A stretch of DNA of 64,000 nt from Haliotis rubra (Eukaryota), in NCBI RefSeq assembly GCF_003918875.1, contig NW_025767479.1, positions 1,736,001 to 1,800,000 on the forward strand, written 5' to 3'. This document shows positions 6,585 to 63,660 of the stretch, piece by piece (position 1 is the first letter of the stretch; the number at the start of each line of letters is the position of its first letter). A program made the translations under genes and the position numbers. The notes under the pieces are model-generated. The model did not search any database. It was not told where the DNA came from and saw only the letters and a program-made list of their open reading frames with translations.

Positions 6585-9500
6585 GCACAGTGATTAAAGC
6601 GTTCGCTCGTCACGCCGAAGGGACGGGTTCGATTCCCCACATGGGTACAATGTGTGAAGCCCATTTCTGGTGTCCCACGGCGTGATATTGCTGGAATATT
6701 GCTAACAGCGCCCAAAACCATACTCCCTCATTCATTTCAATTTCAGACGTATAACATTTAAACATAATGATTCTCTTTAAAGTTGTGCTGTGCTGTATGA
6801 CGGAACTGAAAATGACTCAATCGATTAATGAATCACGTGCACGTCTCAATTCTCTATATACCAAAACTAAAACTAGATAACGAATATATATACAGACAAA
6901 GCAGTCACAAAATATCCATTGGCCCTACACAATATGATGACGCAGAACATGACGATCACGTTCCTAACACGAGATGCACATCATTAACGACATTCACATA
7001 CCTGCCATGACCGGAAACCCGTCACTAGCACCATTCACGTTACTCACATGATGAGAAACACGTCACTAACGACATTCACACGCACCGCACATGATGAGAA
7101 ACACTTTACTCACGACATTCACATGATGAGAAACACTTTACTCACGACATTCACACGCACCGCACATGATGAGAAACACTTTACTTACGACATTCACACA
7201 CCTCACACAGCAAGATACATTCACGTCACTAACGATATTCACCTACCCTACACAGTGAGAGGCAGTGACGATGTGTCGTTTATCAATGATGGAACCGGCA
7301 CACAATCTTAAGGTAAACCGTTCTTCCAAGTAAACTGTCCAAGGGAACTCCTTTTCTTCGGCATCAATGCCACCCACAACACGAGGCATGGCGTACCGAG
7401 ACGCGTTCCCGGTCTTTGAACTTAGGCCACACGGGGGATCTTGAAAAATAAATAAGTTCTTGCGTGATCACATGTCATGTTTTGTACAGAATATCTATGT
7501 TCTTGTCCCAGTCGGTATCTTAACAACAAAGGTCTTAATGATATTTATATTAATAAAATGTTGGGATCGTGGACAGAGTACCCCTTTTCACAGCCTACCA
7601 AATGAAGACAGAGCTCCGTTCTAGGGGTCAGTCTACCCTGTTGATTTCAAACATTTTTAAAGAGCACCAACAGTTCTTCATCGTACATTGGGATATTCAA
7701 CTAGTTCTAGAAGCTTAAAGTATGGAGCATATCCCTACTACAAGCATTTAAACCTGCTGAACAACGGGGGTGTTTTGAACCGCAAGGATGATTTTTGTTT
7801 GGGAGGAACTGGCGGTATCTGATGCTCATGTATGATGCTCTTACAGAAGTAGTTCATATGCATGCTAAATCATTTTGAATCATTTACATCAACCATGCAG
7901 ATCGGTGTGATCGTTGTTGTTGCACAACTGGCCGTTATCACAATAGGATCGTATAGTACTGACTGACTGACTGACTGAGTTTGGTTTTACGCCGCTTTTA
8001 GCAATATTCCAGCTACATCACGGCGGGGGAACACCAGAAGGATCGTATAGTAAATGTCCCGGAAGGTATGCGTTCGACGTGCTCAAAGGAATACCGCAGG
8101 GAGGTAGATGGGCAATGTTACCCATTGGGGAGATCGAAACATTATGCACTTGGATTTTGAAGACATTTAGTTAAAGGTTATTCTTTCCGGTAAAACTGAA
8201 TTGNNNNNNNNNNNNNNNNNNNNNNNNNNNNNNNNNNNNNNNNNNNNNNNNNNNNNNNNNNNNNNNNNNNNNNNNNNNNNNNNNNNNNNNNNNNNNNNNN
8301 NNNNNNNNNNNNNNNNNNNNNNNNNNNNNNNNNTGGACAACATTTGATGGGATTGCTTAACCAAGTCGTAAAGATAATCAGATGAAATGTTACCCGTTTC
8401 ACGTTTGATGGGATCCTGTGTACACTGGTAATAGTAGAACAGGTAAACACACACCGGGGACATGGTAAAGCAGCTCTGGAAATGGTTACACATAAGAGCT
8501 CGTTCCTGGGCAGCTGGAAGGAAGAATCACTTTGAAATTAAAATTTGACATCAAATGCATAGAAGATGAATTGCGTTTCTTTAATGCTGAACAGATGAAC
8601 TATTGAAACGTTACCATCTTAAAAATAATAAAAAACACGTTCAAACTAAGTCAATGCAAAACACATCGCCCAAACACAACAATAGCTACGTCAAATAATT
8701 TTCGCAGAAAATATACTCTCCCAAAAAAGAAACGCATATAGGAAATTCAACTGTATTTTTATGTTTATTTTGAAACATCTTGTAGGCTTTATGAGTCAAT
8801 GAAATATAGCGAAATTACACACTGGGAATGCAGACGTATCCGTCTTTGGCACTAACTCGAGGAAAGTCAGTTTGAGTGTCACATGGAGACGTGTGGTGGC
8901 GCTGAAGTCAATCCCTCGTGTGACCACCGTGGACATCCAGAACTGCACGGCATCGCCTCGGCATCGAACGAATAAGTCTCAGAATCTCGTGTTGCCCAAT
9001 CGCAGCCCACTCTGCCTGTAGTGCCTGTGCGAGTTGCTGAAGTGTCTGGGGCTGAGGGTTACGGCGTTGCACCCGTCTGTCCGGGGCATCCCACAGATGT
9101 TCGATTGGGTTTAAGTCCGGTGATCTTGAGGGCCAGGGGAGCACATTGATGTTGTGGTTCTGGAGGAAGTCTCTGGTGTGACGTGCTGTGTGGGGCCTGG
9201 CATTGTCCTGTTGAAACAACTCCCTCTGGCGATCAATGATTGGAAGGAGGTGTGGGTGTAGGATTTCGTCACAGTACCGTTGAGCTGTCAGGTTGCCCTG
9301 GATCATCACCAAATCACTTCTCCTACGGCAGGTGATCGCTCCCCACATCATAACACTGTCCAGGCCGAATCTGTCCACCTGGGGAACGCAAGCGTCGGCG
9401 AAACGTTCACGTCGACGTCTGTACATCCGCATTCTTCCATCGCGTCGTTCCAATAGAAATCGCGATTCAACACTGAACCAGATTCTACGCCAATTCGGTA

Positions 9501-48012: not shown

Positions 48013-49425
48013 ATGGGGTAAAGGATGTGGGTGTGGGTGTAGCCTGGGATGTGGGTGTGAGGTAGCCGGGGATGTGGGTGTGAGGTAGCCGGGGATGTGG
48101 GCGTGGCTGTAGCCTGGGAGGTGGGTGTGGGTGTAGCCTGGGGTGTGGGTGTGGGTGTAGCCTGGGGTGTGGGTGTGAGGTAGCCTGGGGTGTGGGTGTG
48201 GGTGTAGCCTGGGATGCCTGTGAAGTAGCCTGGGATGAGGGGTGTGGGTGTAGCCTGGGGTGTGTGGGTGTGTAGGGTGTGGGAGTGGGTGTAGCCTTGG
48301 ATGAGGTGAGGTAGCCTGGGGTGTTGGTGTAGCCTGGGGTGTGGGGTGTAGGTGTAGCCTTGGATGAGGGGTGTGGGGTAGCCTGGGGTGTGTGTGTGGG
48401 TGTAGCGGGGTTGTGGGTGTGAGATAGACTGGGATGTGGGTGTGAGGTAGCCTGGGATGTGGGGTGGGTGTGGGTGTAGCCTGGGTTGTGGGTGTGGTTG
48501 TAGCCTGGGATGAGGGTGTGAGGTAGTCTGGGTGTGTGGGTGTGGGTGTAGTCTTGGATGTGGGTGTGGGTGTAGTCTGGGATTTGGGTGTGGGCGTAAC
48601 CTGGGATGAGGGTGTGAGGTAGTCTGGGGGTGTGGGTGTGGGTGTAGCCTGGGTTGAGGGTGTGAGGTAGTCTGGGGGTGTGGGTGTGGGTGTAGTCTTG
48701 GATGTGGGTGTGAAGTAGCCTGGGATGTGGGTCTGGGTGTAGCCTGGGATGTGGGGTAGCCTGGGGTGTAGGGGTAGCCTGAGGTGTGGGGGTAGCCTGG
48801 GATGTGGGGTAGCCTGGGGTGTAGGGGTAGCCTGGGATATGGGTGAGGGTGTAGCCTGTGATGTTGATGTGGGGGTAGCCTGGGGTGTGGGGGTAGCCTG
48901 AGGTGTGGGGGTAGCCTGGGATGCGGGTGTTGGTGTAGCCTGTGATGTTGATGTGGGGGTAGCCTGGGGTGTGGGTGTTGGTGTAGCCTGTGATGTTGAT
49001 GTTGGGGTAGCCTGGGGTGTGGGTGTTGGTGTAGCCTGTGATGTTGATGTGGGGGTAGCCTGGGGTGTGGGTGTTGGTGTAGCCTGTGATGTTGATGTGG
49101 GGGTAGCCTGGGATGTGTTGGTGTTGGTGTAGCCTGTGATGTTGATGTGGGGGTAGCCTGGGGTGTGGGTGTTGGTGTAGCCTGTGATGTTGATGTGGGG
49201 GTAGCCTGGGATGTGGGTGTTGGTGTAGCCTGTGATGTTGATGTGGGGGTAGCCTGTGGGTTGTGGGTGTTGGTGTAGCCTGTGATGTTGATGTGGGGTA
49301 GCCTGGGATGTGGGTGTGTAGCCTGTAGCCTGGGGTGTGGGGGTAGCCTGAGGTGTTGGTGTGGGTGTAGCCTGGGATGTTGATGTGGGGTAGGGGGTGT
49401 GGGTGTAGCCTGGAATGTGGACCAT
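48013..49425. repeat. G/T-rich strand-asymmetric low-complexity array (gtagcctggg..gtgggtgtgg)
   Basis: About 1.4 kb, begins about 70 bp after the SP5 AATAAA. Confidence 0.93.
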
Positions 49426-57384: not shown

Positions 57385-58170
57385 AGTTCATAGTTTAGTT
57401 GGCTTAGGACATGGAATGACATTGGTTCTCTGTTCATTAAGCAGAACAATGTAGTTACACTGGTTCCTAGTTTAGTTGGCTTAGAACATGGAATGGAATG
57501 ACATTGGTTCTTTGTTCATTAAGCAGAGCAATGTTTAGTGACACTGGTTTATAGTTTAGTTGGCATAGAACATGGAATGACATTGGTTCTCTGTTCATTA
57601 AGCAGAACAAATTTAGAGACACTGGTCCATTGCTTAGTTGGCATAGGACATGGAATGACATTGGTTCTTTGTTCATTAAGGATAACAAATGAAGTGACAC
57701 TGGTTCATAGTTTAGTTGGCATAGAACATGGAATGACATTGGTTCTCTGTTCATTAAGCAGAGCAATGTCGTGATGCTGGTTTATAGTTTAGTTGGCATA
57801 AGACATGGAATGACATTGGTTCTCTGTTCATTAAGCAGAACAAATGTAGTGACACTGGTTCATAGTTTAGTTGGCATAGAACATGGAATGACATTGGTTC
57901 TCTGTTCATTAAGCAGAGCAATGTAGTGACACTGGTTCATAGTTTAGTTGGCATAGAACATGGAATGACATTGGTTCTCTGTTCATTAAGCATAACAAAT
58001 GTAGTGACACTGGTTCATAGTTTAGTTGGCATAGAACATGGAATGGCATTGGTTCTCTCATCATTAAGGAAAACAAATGTAGTGACACTGGTCCATTGCT
58101 TAGTTGGCATAGAACATGGAATGACATTGGTTCTCTGTTCATTAAGCAGAGCAATGTAGTGACACTGGTT
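57385..58170. repeat. 77-78-bp tandem repeat (dimer of about 39-bp subunits) downstream of the SP6 stop
   Basis: gtgacactggttcatagtttagttggcatagaacatggaatgacattggttctctgttcattaagc.., about 10 copies; decayed monomers continue to about 58500. Confidence 0.92.
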
Positions 58171-58883
58171 CAAAGTTTTGTAGGCCCCGGAAATGTAACG
58201 ACAATTTATAGTTCATTGATCATAAAATGTAATGTCTATCGTTCATATTTCTCTAAGCATAGAAAATGTAGTGAAATGATTCATAGTTAATTAAGAATAT
58301 AAAATGTAAAGACACTGGTTCATAGTTAATTAAGTACTGCAAATGTAATCACACTAGCTCATATGCAATAACACCTAACCAATGTTCATGAGGCATAGCA
58401 AATTCACTGATCCAAGCACAGACAATGCAATAAGGTTCATAGGGTCATTAGGTGTAGGAAAGTAGATGACGATGGCCAATAGAGTATTAGGCATAGAAAA
58501 TCAATTTACATCTCAGTAATAGATTACTGACCTCGGAATACTGCTCGTAGTAATATCTTAAGAATGATACCACAGTTGTGTATACTTTCATAATATGTAA
58601 CTATGCATATCATTATACTTATATTATTTTCGAATAAAAGGTCTGACAAACAATTTGTTTACGTATTTGTGATTCTATTTTACACTACACTACAGCTATA
58701 GTCACAAGAGTGAGTGACACCAACGTATCATACCAACAGCAAAGTCAAACTGTCACAAACGGATCTTCATGTTTGATGACACTTATGACTAGCATGATGA
58801 GTTGGGTTGGAGAGTCTCAGGAATAGCTTGCAAGTCGTCTAAGGCGACAGAAGGTGGCTGTGCAGAGTTGTTGCCCTTACCGG

Positions 58884-59035
58884 AGAAGTCTAGTGGTTAA
58901 AGCGTCCGCTCGTAACGCTGTAGACCGGGGTTCGATTCCCCGCATGGGTACAGTGTGTGAAACCTATTTCTGGCATCCCCCGCAGTGATATTGCTGGAAT
59001 ATTGCTGAAAACGGCATAAACCTACACTCACTCAC
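58884..59035 (+). mobile_element. SINE family A (diverged)
   Basis: Matches consensus. Confidence 0.8.
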
Positions 59036-60441: not shown

Positions 60442-60448
60442 TATAAAA
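60442..60448 (+). promoter_or_regulatory. Candidate TATA box of SP7
   Basis: TATAAAA 45 bp upstream of the ATG at 60487. Confidence 0.5.
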
Positions 60449-60486
60449 GAGCTTAGTCATACAATTAACCTTTGAGCAAGACCATC

Positions 60487-63400
60487 ATGGTGGCACTTAG
60501 GCTGTTGACGTTAGGACTAGTTCTTGTTTCTCAGACGGTCGCCCAATTTTTCATTCCCAATTTCGGTAGGTTTCATTTGTTTATTTTCTTTAAAAACCCG
60601 TGATATTAATGACAATTGTTCCAGCTGCCATGAAGACGCAGGTCAAAAGTTCAACTTGTAATGACCATTGCCTGTTTAGTGTAGAACGCACACACCAATA
60701 TTCCAGCTACATGTAACATTATTTAATAATTGAGATATTGGTTACATCATGAGCAACGATCTACACAATTGCGAAACGATGATATTTGTCAACCTTTTCA
60801 GTGAACCTGACCACTTGATGTCGGTAGTCGCCTCATGTGACACGCAAAGACTGCTGATAATCAATTCTCATAATGAGTAGTTAATATCTGTCTGTCTGTA
60901 TGCCTGTCTATGTGAGTTTGAATGATTCAGAATCAATCAATTTGATCCAACCATCCAATGTTTATAAAAGGTGAGACTTTATGGATGTCAACTTCTTTGT
61001 TATTATGAGGAACTTTTTATTGTGAGGAACATGACGTTTCGTAAATTCAAAGACTTGTTTTCGAGCTAAATTTGTCGAAATCCATACGTTCTCCTAATAA
61101 GAACTTGATCTAATGCTGATCAAGTGATTGGATTGGGTGTTTTAGCGGGGTACATCTCGGCTAGCGTAAAAAGAAGATCATACTAGTTGTTGCAAATGTA
61201 GGGAAACCAATATGGTGCAGACAAACCGAGAATAATTTGAAGATGAGATTCGAACCCAGGAACATAGGATTACTATGTTACTCTATGACAAGGGTAGTAT
61301 TGACCCCATTTGTAAAACCATGTATATGTATCGCCCTCTGTTTCCGATCCAGTTTTTATCATCAGCGTTTTAATTCTTCCAGGCGCTTTCACCTGCGGAT
61401 GGAAATATGGTGGACAATGCAAGCGATTCTGTGACAGCAGAGACTACGTCCTAGGCCGAAAACCATGTGACGGATCTGGTACCTGCTGTGCTCGTTCTCT
61501 ACGTAAGAAATACTAACATCTTACCCATATGCAGAGTTGATCTAATTTCTCTTTAGAAAGTGGTCAAATGTAACAGATATTGTATTTGGGATCGCTATTT
61601 TTCAGTAAAGTACAGATTCTTGCGCTTTTGTTGGGTTGAGTCCCTTCCGGGATTCGAACCCCTACTCTCAGAGTCAGTCACCTAATAGCCAGCACTCAAG
61701 AATCCCAGAAGGGATTCAGCCAAAGTACTACAATCTGTGCTTTACTGAGAAAGTAGAATCTCAAATATAGCATCTGCTATTTTAATTTCTTTTAAGCCAT
61801 CAGTCCTTGTGGGTGTTCTTGATGAGAACATATACCATTCCTGATTAGATATGAGATATGATTGCCCTGAGATGAACACGAGCGTCACAAATACAATGGT
61901 AAAACTTGTTTACTGTATGTCACTTATAAGACAAAATAATCTGTTTATGTTACTATTTGATTCGTTACTATGTAAATCTGCATACTTCTCAAACATTCTT
62001 GGCTTCGGTACAAACAAAAACTGCTGTATAGTTGCCTATCTCTGATCAGATTCCAACACTAGCTGCATTATCTTACCAACAAAGATCCCCCTGATTTTAC
62101 TCAAACTACATGCATAGTGAGTGGATAGATATAGTTATACGTAGTTATTACAATACAAAAACAGCAAAGATAATACAAGAAACGATCCTACATTGCAGTC
62201 AGATAGGAACCGAACCAAATCGACACCTGTCAACTACATTTTTGCATGCCTATATTATATTCTGATGTTTTAATAACATTGCGAATTGATAAATACAAGA
62301 AACAAATTTACTGAAGGATCAATAAGATGTTTGTTCTTGTAGCCTGCTCTTCATATGGCGGAGTGTGTCGCTTGGATGGATGTGTCAGTAACTTTGAGGT
62401 GCATCTTCAGTTCAACGTTCGATGCCGGTTCGGAGGAGCGTGTTGTGTGAGGCGTTGGAAAAGGCCACTGACGCAGACCACAACGACCACAACTACTACG
62501 AGTCCCGTGCCGGCTGGTTCGTTGCTAGTTGATAATAATAATTATAATCTCCAACTAGTTTTCAACTATTTTATAAGATATACACAATGGGAGAAATATG
62601 AGCACCCTCGATCCTGAAGATCGAAGCAAACAAAGAAATTGTGTGTCATTATCAAATATCCTTATCCTTATAATTAGAATGAAGAATGAAAGCGGTATCA
62701 ACATTAAGCACCCAACTGCCATGTATCGTGTACTTCAAATATTGTTTTCTTGTTCAACGCTGGTTTCAGCTATATGACGGGGATCTGTAAGTAATCGAGT
62801 CTGGACCAGACAATCCAGTGATTAACATCATGAGCATCGTTCCACGCAATGGAGATGCGACATGTGTCAACCATGTGTCCAATTCTAACTCGGATCTTCG
62901 CGGGTTCATACTTTAAGGAAAATATCACTGCAGACGACATTTCTACGGTCATGCGTTCTCAGTATGAATTTGTTTTTGAAACTGAAGCAATATCTCTGTC
63001 TTTGCTTTTACTTAAATATTTCGTTTGCACGATATTCATACACTTTCTCTCCATGATGTCATGACGTCACAAACTTATGAACGTTGAAACAAGAATACAT
63101 CTGTTTTACTCGGAGACAGTTTAGTTTAAAATCCTAACCCTCGACATGCTAACAACAGTGATTAGATGCTCCTAGACTTTCTCTGATTCTTTATTATTCT
63201 TGAATTCGTTTAATGTGTGCGAGGCGGTGGGTTAGCCCAGTCTCGCCGAAGACCCAAGTTCGATTCCCCACATGAGTACAATGTGTGAAGCCCATTTCTG
63301 GTGTCCCCCACCGTGATATATTGCGAAAAGCGGCGTAAAGCCCAACTCACTCGCTCACTTTAATTTGTGTAATGATAATTCCCAAGGCAGAAACTCAAGA

Positions 63401-63660
63401 TATTCGTTTAATTTATTTACACATTGTGTTTGCTGTGATTCATGGACGGTACATAGTGTTTTTGCAGCATGTGCTTCACGACCCAGATTTAATCCTGTAA
63501 CTGGTCGTATCTTGGGTGGTATGTCCGTGAGCTCATCGTGTCAGTGGCCCTGGATGGTGTCTATCAAGCTAGGAACAACCTCCAACATTGGCTCCCATGT
63601 GTGTGCTGGAGTGCTCGTCAACCCTAACAAGGTCCTCACCACATCCAGCTGTGTGCTCGG
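60487..63660 (+). CDS. SP7 (5' partial): secreted protein with two beta-defensin-like domains, Thr-rich linker and non-catalytic serine-protease homolog domain (His57 to Ser)
   Basis: Exons: 60487-60565 MVALRLLTLGLVLVSQTVAQFFIPNF; 61383-61502 six-Cys domain ending CC; 62343-62516 six-Cys domain ending CC plus T8 linker; 63468-63660 CASRP..TGR|ILGG..CQWPW..VCAG..VLTTSSCVL. Phases 1/1/1/2 as in paralogs. Continues beyond the window. Confidence 0.87.
61383..61502 (+). other. SP7 exon 2: beta-defensin/big-defensin-like domain 1
   Basis: AFTCGWKYGGQCKRFCDSRDYVLGRKPCDGSGTCCARSL = C-x7-C-x3-C-x11-C-x5-CC with a G-x-C motif; ttccag/gtaaga splice sites. Confidence 0.75.
61552..61780 (-). mobile_element. 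Repeat family D, inverted pair
   Basis: Minus copy 61552-61695 followed by a plus-strand partial copy. Confidence 0.65.
62343..62516 (+). other. SP7 exon 3: beta-defensin/big-defensin-like domain 2 plus Thr-rich linker
   Basis: CSSYGGVCRLDGCVSNFEVHLQFNVRCRFGGACCVRRWKRPLTQTTTTTTTTSPVPA = C-x6-C-x4-C-x13-C-x5-CC. Confidence 0.75.
62745..62906 (-). mobile_element. SINE-like family B (internally deleted)
   Basis: Reverse complement of the consensus. Confidence 0.75.
63221..63358 (+). mobile_element. SINE family A (internal deletions)
   Basis: Matches consensus. Confidence 0.8.

Follow-up and report, generated by a model that had tools for sequence, protein, structure and literature searches.

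Clip-domain proteases and their catalytically dead homologues run melanisation, Toll signalling and horseshoe-crab clotting, and are usually deemed an arthropod invention. In the dead members, the clip-domain serine protease homologues (clip-SPHs), the usual catalytic loss is a replacement of Ser by Gly. Here we describe a molluscan gene of similar design, SP7 of the abalone Haliotis rubra, which begins close to the end of a 64,000-nucleotide stretch of the genome (assembly GCF_003918875.1, contig NW_025767479.1, positions 1,736,001 to 1,800,000 of the forward strand; hereafter the window) and occupies positions 60487 to 63660 of it. We consider it fairly probable that this gene encodes a secreted two-chain non-catalytic homologue of S1 proteases with paired defensin-like modules, which acts as a clip-SPH-like adaptor or cofactor of extracellular proteolysis.

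Like the arthropod clip-SPHs (PPAF-II, masquerade, Manduca SPH1/2 and Anopheles CLIPA), the abalone protein is predicted to be secreted and carries small six-Cys modules terminated by a CC pair in front of a chymotrypsin-fold domain. A linker, an interchain Cys, Arg-specific activation, and a catalytic triad that is destroyed with the fold kept are also common to both. However, the abalone modules are shorter (32-34 residues from the first Cys to the sixth, C1-C6), match no CLIP profile and form a bare three-stranded defensin fold in the model; the abalone family, which is molluscan, has a Thr-rich stalk and loses both His57 and Ser195 (the latter as seen in orthologues). By the tests run, the gene is a clip-SPH in logic and lies outside the Pfam CLIP family, and we infer by analogy that it is a functional counterpart of the arthropod proteins.

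A precedent for this kind of inactivation is known from vertebrates: azurocidin, or heparin-binding protein (CAP37), is an inactive elastase-like S1 protein with the replacements His41Ser and Ser175Gly, which is secreted and works in defence through binding (PMC6942865). It shares with the abalone family an S1 fold with a His-to-Ser change and a lost catalytic Ser. Unlike the abalone gene product, it belongs to the vertebrate neutrophil granule, lacks N-terminal Cys modules and two-chain activation, and has Gly, not Lys or Asn, in place of the Ser. The inactivation of azurocidin arose independently of that in the abalone gene; by analogy, it shows that binding by an S1 fold can be of use in defence even when His has changed to Ser and Ser195 is gone.

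The closest counterparts of the modules themselves are big defensins and beta-defensins (the C-terminal domain of oyster Cg-BigDef1, 6qbk/6qbl; human beta-defensins hBD1 and hBD4). Shared features are the Cys spacing, the G-x-C motif, the predicted fold, the cationic character of the modules in Haliotis, and a Cys-rich domain on an exon of its own after a phase-1 intron (PMC7203481). The difference lies in the gene: the abalone module is an internal, duplicated, symmetrical exon in a gene for a protease homologue, whereas that of the defensins is the terminal exon of a small peptide gene. Two tandem modules with a beta-defensin fold on one chain, as predicted for SP7, are also found in avian AvBD11 and in the tick carboxypeptidase inhibitor, but these are free-standing proteins of ~80 residues, not pro-domains of protease homologues, and the module pair as a whole superposes on them poorly, with a root-mean-square deviation (rmsd) of 8-10 A.

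The part of SP7 that lies in the window consists of four exons, all on the forward strand. Exon 1 (60487..60565, ending in phase 1, donor G|GTAGGT) contains the ATG and a predicted hydrophobic signal peptide (MVALRLLTLGLVLVSQTVAQ FFIPNF), and its segment forms an N-terminal helix in the full-length model. Exon 2 (61383..61502; 120 nt, symmetrical phase 1/1; translation AFTCGWKYGGQCKRFCDSRDYVLGRKPCDGSGTCCARSL) encodes the first module, D1, with the spacing C-x7-C-x3-C-x11-C-x5-CC and the motif YGGQC. Exon 3 (62343..62516; 174 nt, phase 1/1) encodes the second module, D2 (C-x6-C-x4-C-x13-C-x5-CC with YGGVC), the sequence VRRWKR downstream of it, in which an R-W-K-R motif of the R-X-K-R type directly follows the CC of D2 (62453-62464), and a stalk of eight consecutive Thr codons (62477-62500). 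Exon 4 (63468..63660, ending in phase 2) opens the protease-like domain with the interchain Cys (63470-72) and the activation bond between Arg and Ile in TGR|ILGG (63508|63509), followed by WPW and Cys42; further on, in VLTTSSC, the Ser codon AGC occupies the position of His57 (63647-63649). The gene continues past the window. A scripted rebuild of the gene showed that all acceptors of the four exons are AG, all donors are GT, and 188 codons are open. Re-reading the sequence confirmed the preliminary description of this locus in its four-exon structure, signal peptide, both Cys spacings, GGxC, Thr8, R|ILGG, WPW and VLTTSSC. A regular-expression scan for the Cys pattern in six frames of the 64 kb gave two matches, exons 2 and 3, and a looser Cys-density scan of the window yielded no further six-Cys module.

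That the Cys-rich exons are joined to the protease exon, as had been assumed, is borne out by two further abalone species, in which the orthologues are annotated in this form. A phmmer search with exon 4 against 1.84 billion representatives retrieved a 376-aa protein (P0002) 94% identical across this exon, which is XP_067651065.1 of Haliotis asinina, encoded by eight exons, the first four of which are as in the window gene. The two proteins are 85.6% identical across the 188 residues in the window (23/26 residues in exon 1 and 59/63 in exon 4), and the orthologue from H. cracherodii is 75% identical to the same 188 residues. The domain order is the same in the window gene and its orthologues, our splice model coincides exon for exon with the RefSeq models of both, and the window shows synteny with the H. 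asinina locus at 70-88% DNA identity. Judged by its orthologues, from which the eight-exon plan is taken, the window holds exons 1-4 of an 8-exon Haliotis gene. In RefSeq the genes bear generic names ('chymotrypsin-like elastase family member 2A') and nothing more specific.

Directly downstream of the SP7 orthologue, both species have a tandem paralogue (L001:18838-24281 in H. asinina and L002:25178-31101 in H. cracherodii; P0019/P0152, 376-379 aa). It, too, has the two-module dead-protease architecture, with seven Cys in the first module (CWRFCGQC...), TTASC and GDNGG. The H. rubra counterpart of this paralogue would fall beyond the 3' end of the window, and the tandem duplication, as these loci indicate, is older than the split between H. 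asinina and H. cracherodii.

The protease-like domain is readily recognized: exon 4 alone matches Pfam Trypsin (PF00089, E = 5.3e-8), and the full-length model of the orthologue aligns with elastase at a TM-score of 0.84 by target. In Haliotis the domain is acidic (isoelectric point, pI, 5.3). In the family alignment the Ser of VLTTSSC stands under the His of active relatives, so the proposed substitution of His57 by Ser holds, with the AGC codon read directly, and in orthologues Ser195 is lost as well. There GDSGG is replaced by RDKGG (H. asinina), RDNGG (H. cracherodii) or, in the paralogues, GDNGG, which places Lys or Asn in the orthologues at position 195, a position past the window end. 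Only Asp102 of the catalytic triad is kept, and the protein is therefore a non-peptidase homologue. Columns invariant among 12 family members include the interchain Cys126, the P1 residue Arg138, WPW, Cys257 (Cys122), Asp329 (Asp194) and Gly331 (Gly196); the predicted partner of the interchain Cys is Cys122 in the protease-like domain. With the activation and tethering residues invariant and the triad lost, the zymogen switch and the tether are therefore conserved, while catalysis is not.

The pattern of selection was determined from the ratio of the rates of non-synonymous and synonymous substitutions (dN/dS). Exons 1-4 give 0.19 in the comparison with H. asinina and 0.25 in that with H. cracherodii; for exon 4 alone the ratio is 0.08-0.20, and for exon 3, 0.13-0.22. 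All 12 module Cys (12/12) are kept in three Haliotis species. The low dN/dS, together with the invariant P1 Arg, interchain Cys pair and Asp194, therefore indicates a maintained pseudo-protease and not a decaying gene. The loss of catalytic residues and the weak donor of exon 3 (G|GTTCGT) could be taken as signs of a decaying pseudogene, or of a chance or mis-spliced set of open reading frames (ORFs), but the 188 open codons, the retained module Cys, the dN/dS of 0.19-0.25, the full-length orthologues and the tandem paralogue in two other species, and the persistence of the family across gastropods with its activation machinery invariant make this explanation scarcely credible.

The prerequisites of a clip-SPH cofactor are present in the protein, namely a conserved P1 Arg, an Ile16-type N-terminus, Asp194 and the tethering disulfide, and a mechanism along these lines can be proposed. 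The protein would be secreted as a zymogen-like pro-form, and an Arg-specific protease would cleave it at R|ILGG. The new Ile N-terminus would then form a salt bridge to the retained Asp194, ordering a non-catalytic binding cleft, and the defensin-like pair would stay attached via the interchain disulfide. The resulting two-chain protein could serve as a binding or adaptor subunit (cofactor) of a proteolytic system outside the cell, probably one of defence, and in the Haliotis copy the cationic modules (net charge +4 for D1 and +3 for D2, pI 8.7-8.9 in the window gene) would provide a targeting or interaction surface.

Several points weigh against this scheme. The cofactor or adaptor role is proposed by analogy, and the loss of residue 195 in H. 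rubra itself is read across from the orthologues. The neighbouring genes encode ordinary active chymotrypsin-like proteases, with which a non-immune setting, for instance digestion or mucus, is also compatible. The full-length model has a disordered linker, and the modules appear undocked from the protease-like domain; the clip domain of PPAF-II docks on its protease-like domain. Finally, the Lottia modules are neutral to acidic, that is, module charge is not conserved, which favours binding of proteins or ligands over a membrane-active antimicrobial role across the family and weakens a general antimicrobial reading, one of the functions suggested in the preliminary description.

The R-W-K-R motif after D2 raises another possibility: it may be a convertase site, at which a furin-type enzyme would free D1-D2 as a secreted double beta-defensin, leaving the pseudo-protease as a carrier or a separate product. 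In 3/3 SP7 orthologues the CC of D2 is followed by an R-X-K-R sequence, which reads RSKR in H. cracherodii and RWKR in the window gene as well as in H. asinina. The window gene has two cationic modules, the two-domain beta-defensin AvBD11 is among the structural matches, and RRKR furin-type sites occur in a related active family, though at the activation bond. We nevertheless consider such a precursor unlikely. The motif is found neither in the downstream paralogue (LRKPRP, LRRPEG) nor in other gastropod members, its P1' residue is Pro, which is unfavourable for furin, and it may be due to chance, as defensins commonly carry a K/R-rich tail behind the CC. Moreover, shed modules would hardly explain the conserved interchain Cys pair, P1 Arg and Asp194.

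The identity of the modules was assessed by sequence profiles. Both fit C-x(4-8)-C-x(3-5)-C-x(9-13)-C-x(4-7)-CC with G-x-C before Cys2, the beta-defensin/big-defensin spacing. A profile built from 18 modules and compared with all PDB sequences ranked a consensus human beta-defensin first (E = 0.003, six Cys aligned), followed by helianthamide, oyster big defensin 1, a crocodile beta-defensin (CpoBD13) and platypus DLP-2; the six Cys of the modules line up with those of the human beta-defensin, the big defensin and CpoBD13, and no clip domain was among the matches listed. The Pfam families Defensin_beta, Defensin_beta_2 and Defensin_big gave no match above threshold, Defensin_beta_2 being sub-threshold in six of the 18 modules (best E = 0.012); the homology of the modules to defensins is therefore unproven. 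Comparison of the module profile with five defensin-fold sequences by hhalign gave 91%, a value inflated by the choice of these five from the hits of the same profile. Single-sequence phmmer searches against PDB found nothing significant (D1 matched the hBD4 chain 5ki9, 'Beta-defensin 104', at E = 1, and D2 had no relevant match), and a language-model look-up pointed to beta-defensin clusters (0.82), which we take as a lead only. The only Pfam match of single modules, a sub-threshold one to DSL (E = 0.0029, below the cut-off), was rejected as an artefact of Cys composition.

These profiles also bear on the idea that the modules belong, as divergent but true members, to the CLIP family of arthropods, which would make SP7 a molluscan clip-domain SPH and a homologue of PPAF-II, masquerade and CLIPA. 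The layout is indeed CLIP-like, with six Cys ending in CC, G-x-C before Cys2, a position N-terminal to the S1 domain, an interchain Cys and an Arg activation site, and dual-clip proteases occur in insects. In addition, a scallop protease has been published with a 'clip-domain homologue' (Zhu et al. 2007, as cited in PMC6920836). However, none of the 29 mollusc modules (0/18 and 0/11 in two sets) matched Pfam CLIP (PF12032) or CLIP_1 (PF18322) at E <= 10, whereas 8/8 CLIP-type control modules matched Pfam CLIP with E-values down to 2e-17. Comparison with a CLIP alignment by hhalign gave a probability of only 0.35% for the SP7-type and 0.2% for the active-family module set, a hidden Markov model (HMM) of the modules did not recover the CLIP controls, no clip structure appeared in the fold searches, and the C1-C6 span of the controls is 39-53 residues. 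The absence of a CLIP match is no proof of non-homology, and the clip and beta-defensin folds could have a deep common origin; still, we regard direct membership in CLIP as improbable.

The clip fold of PPAF-II and PAP-2 is mixed alpha/beta, a beta-sheet with flanking helices. The AlphaFold (AF2) model of the module pair, for which the H. asinina protein and an alignment of 11 rows were used, shows each module with three strands, plus a single helix of 4 residues (predicted local distance difference test, pLDDT, 81). In a Foldseek search of PDB, the top matches of the pair were hBD4 (probability 1.00, rmsd 1.7 A) and oyster big defensin 1 (0.97), and almost all remaining matches were defensins, AvBD11 among them; helianthamide was matched too. 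VIA-align placed D1 on the C-domain of the oyster big defensin (rmsd 1.6 A, 37 residues) and also on hBD4, and D2 on hBD1 (rmsd 1.9 A, 33/36 residues); overall, superpositions on beta- and big defensins gave rmsd of 1.6-2.3 A across 33-40 residues. Searches of AFDB clusters and ESM Atlas gave the same defensin picture. Clip-domain structures were absent from the fold-search matches, a missing match being weak evidence for domains of ~35 residues, and the absolute scores were all weak, as expected at this length. The modules are thus predicted to adopt a three-stranded antiparallel beta-defensin fold; predicted fold and profiles agree on the beta-defensin-like character originally proposed for them and do not recognise CLIP.

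Given these matches, the modules might instead block a hydrolase, as anemone helianthamide does with alpha-amylase and the two-domain tick inhibitor with carboxypeptidase, with the dead protease domain as a decoy or scaffold. Helianthamide recurs as both a sequence and a structure match, a tick carboxypeptidase-inhibitor cluster appears weakly in AFDB (rank 14, rmsd 10.5), and the gene sits within an array of active chymotrypsin-like proteases. We find an inhibitor very unlikely, as the matches are at the level of the fold only and solved structures of the tick inhibitor are not among the PDB fold matches. The tick inhibitor acts through a free C-terminal tail, while the abalone modules are internal, and inhibition leaves the conserved activation switch unexplained.

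The search of mollusc proteomes for the architecture, which the preliminary description had called for, identified a gastropod-wide dead family with one or two modules. Relatives with two modules were found in Lottia and Littorina (first module degenerate), and relatives with one module in Aplysia and Patella. These gastropod relatives lack Ser195, and the His57 position is occupied by Arg, Gln, Tyr or Asp or retains His. In a midpoint-rooted tree the dead gastropod clade has a support of 92/94; an apparently active Patella protein falls outside it on a long branch (2.38), with unsure placement. Neither a profile search with the whole-protein alignment nor the module HMM extended the family: the former added no new taxa, and the latter no further carriers among 150 representative hits.

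Abalones also have a second type of dead S1 protein within the same clade, with an N-terminal vWA domain, VITTASC and GDEGG (P0050 in H. asinina and P0161 in H. rufescens), annotated as 'collagen alpha-1(XII) chain-like'. Outside molluscs, a 381-aa 'chymotrypsin-like protease CTRL-1' of the nemertean Lineus longissimus (P0277) has two weak matches to the module profile before its protease domain (E = 0.027 and 6.8), which hints that the architecture may reach beyond molluscs.

With the active Patella protein as query, we found an active family characterised by TAAHC, GDSGGP, RRKR|IVGG and one N-terminal six-Cys module. It is represented in the gastropods Lottia, Pomacea, Haliotis, Babylonia, Lymnaea and Biomphalaria and in the bivalves Saccostrea and Sinanodonta. 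Its members (among them Patella SNE40_015533, Lottia LOTGIDRAFT_153888, Pomacea 'CTRL-1', Haliotis 'elastase-1-like' and the Saccostrea and Sinanodonta proteins) share with the abalone gene the homologous module, an exon plan with a phase-1/1 module exon, a Thr/Ser/Pro-rich linker, the interchain Cys and WPWM. They differ from it in having a single module, intact TAAHC and GDSGGP, and furin-type activation at RRKR|IVGG. The modules of the active family and the SP7-type modules are homologous, as judged by hhalign (probability 94.5%, E = 7.7e-8), and the active-family module is unrelated to CLIP both by profile and by Pfam. Since homologous modules occur in a widespread active family, the dead two-module proteins were thus most likely derived from an active module-plus-protease architecture. 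The active family would be the older one, catalytically intact and, to go by its furin-type site, furin-activated. We assume that the scallop CfSP with its 'clip-domain homologue' probably belongs to this active one-module family.

The exon structure bears on the origin of the modules. The two module exons are both of phase 1/1, with a phase-1 intron immediately upstream of each, and the Lottia family member and the active gene of Pomacea have a phase-1/1 module exon as well. In the genes of big defensins and beta-defensins, a conserved phase-1 intron marks the 5' end of the Cys-rich region, and abalones have been reported to possess big defensins (PMC7203481). Symmetrical phase-1/1 exons fit exon duplication or shuffling. 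We put forward, tentatively and as a possibility somewhat short of even, that the modules are true descendants of the Cys-rich exon of a big- or beta-defensin, which entered an S1 gene as a symmetrical phase-1/1 exon ahead of the gastropod/bivalve split and underwent duplication later, in the gastropod lineage of dead proteins. A defensin module would in that case be the basis of a clip-like system of proteases and pseudo-proteases in molluscs, either independently of CLIP, with one disulfide scaffold recruited convergently in both groups, or with the module as a short ancestral form that later expanded into CLIP; in the latter case the origins of clip domains and beta-defensins would be joined.

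The genes themselves are already in RefSeq. We found no description of tandem defensin-fold modules on a dead protease, or of the gastropod-wide family, in the literature searched, most subscription journals lying outside the search. The earlier statement that such an architecture is not described outside arthropods goes too far: a single module on an active protease is widespread in molluscs, and the scallop 'clip-domain homologue' published in 2007 means that a restriction to arthropods needs qualifying.

Molluscs have a set of proteins parallel to that of arthropods: an active family that would be activated by furin, to judge by its site, and, most likely derived from this, a family of pseudo-proteases present throughout gastropods. 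The regulatory modules of both escape current domain libraries and look like beta-defensins. Both families are candidates for the proteolytic machinery of mollusc humoral immunity, that of farmed abalone included. With them, the link that has long been suspected between clip domains and big- or beta-defensins becomes testable. In addition, the zymogen-activation switch seems to be conserved in them while the catalytic His and Ser have been variously lost among living gastropods.

The remainder of the window contains about six other S1 protease genes on both strands (2977-57184). They have intact TAAHC, SAAHC or TASHC, the motifs previously ascribed to paralogues of SP7, each with GDSGG, and none has a six-Cys module. 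Gly/Cys-rich ORFs (GCGCSLGCGC...) at 47.9-49.4 kb were considered as a Cys-rich coding feature and rejected: they represent a 24-bp G/T-rich minisatellite of ~58 copies (48023-49393), which follows closely on the final exon of a different protease paralogue.

Upstream of SP7, a TATA-like box (TATAAAAG, 60442..60449, forward strand), read from the sequence, lies 38 bp 5' of the start codon. The intergenic region before it contains a 78-bp satellite of ~10 copies with 87% matches (57386-58185), and H. asinina has this satellite in the corresponding syntenic position (L001, about 7644-7905). A tRNA-like sequence at 58879-58950 scores 31 bits with the Rfam tRNA model, and ARAGORN reports no gene there. 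Similar stretches occur at ~61640-61700 and ~63210-63330, in introns 2 and 3 of SP7, and several look-alikes are found in the H. asinina locus; the sequence is probably a tRNA-derived short interspersed nuclear element (SINE).

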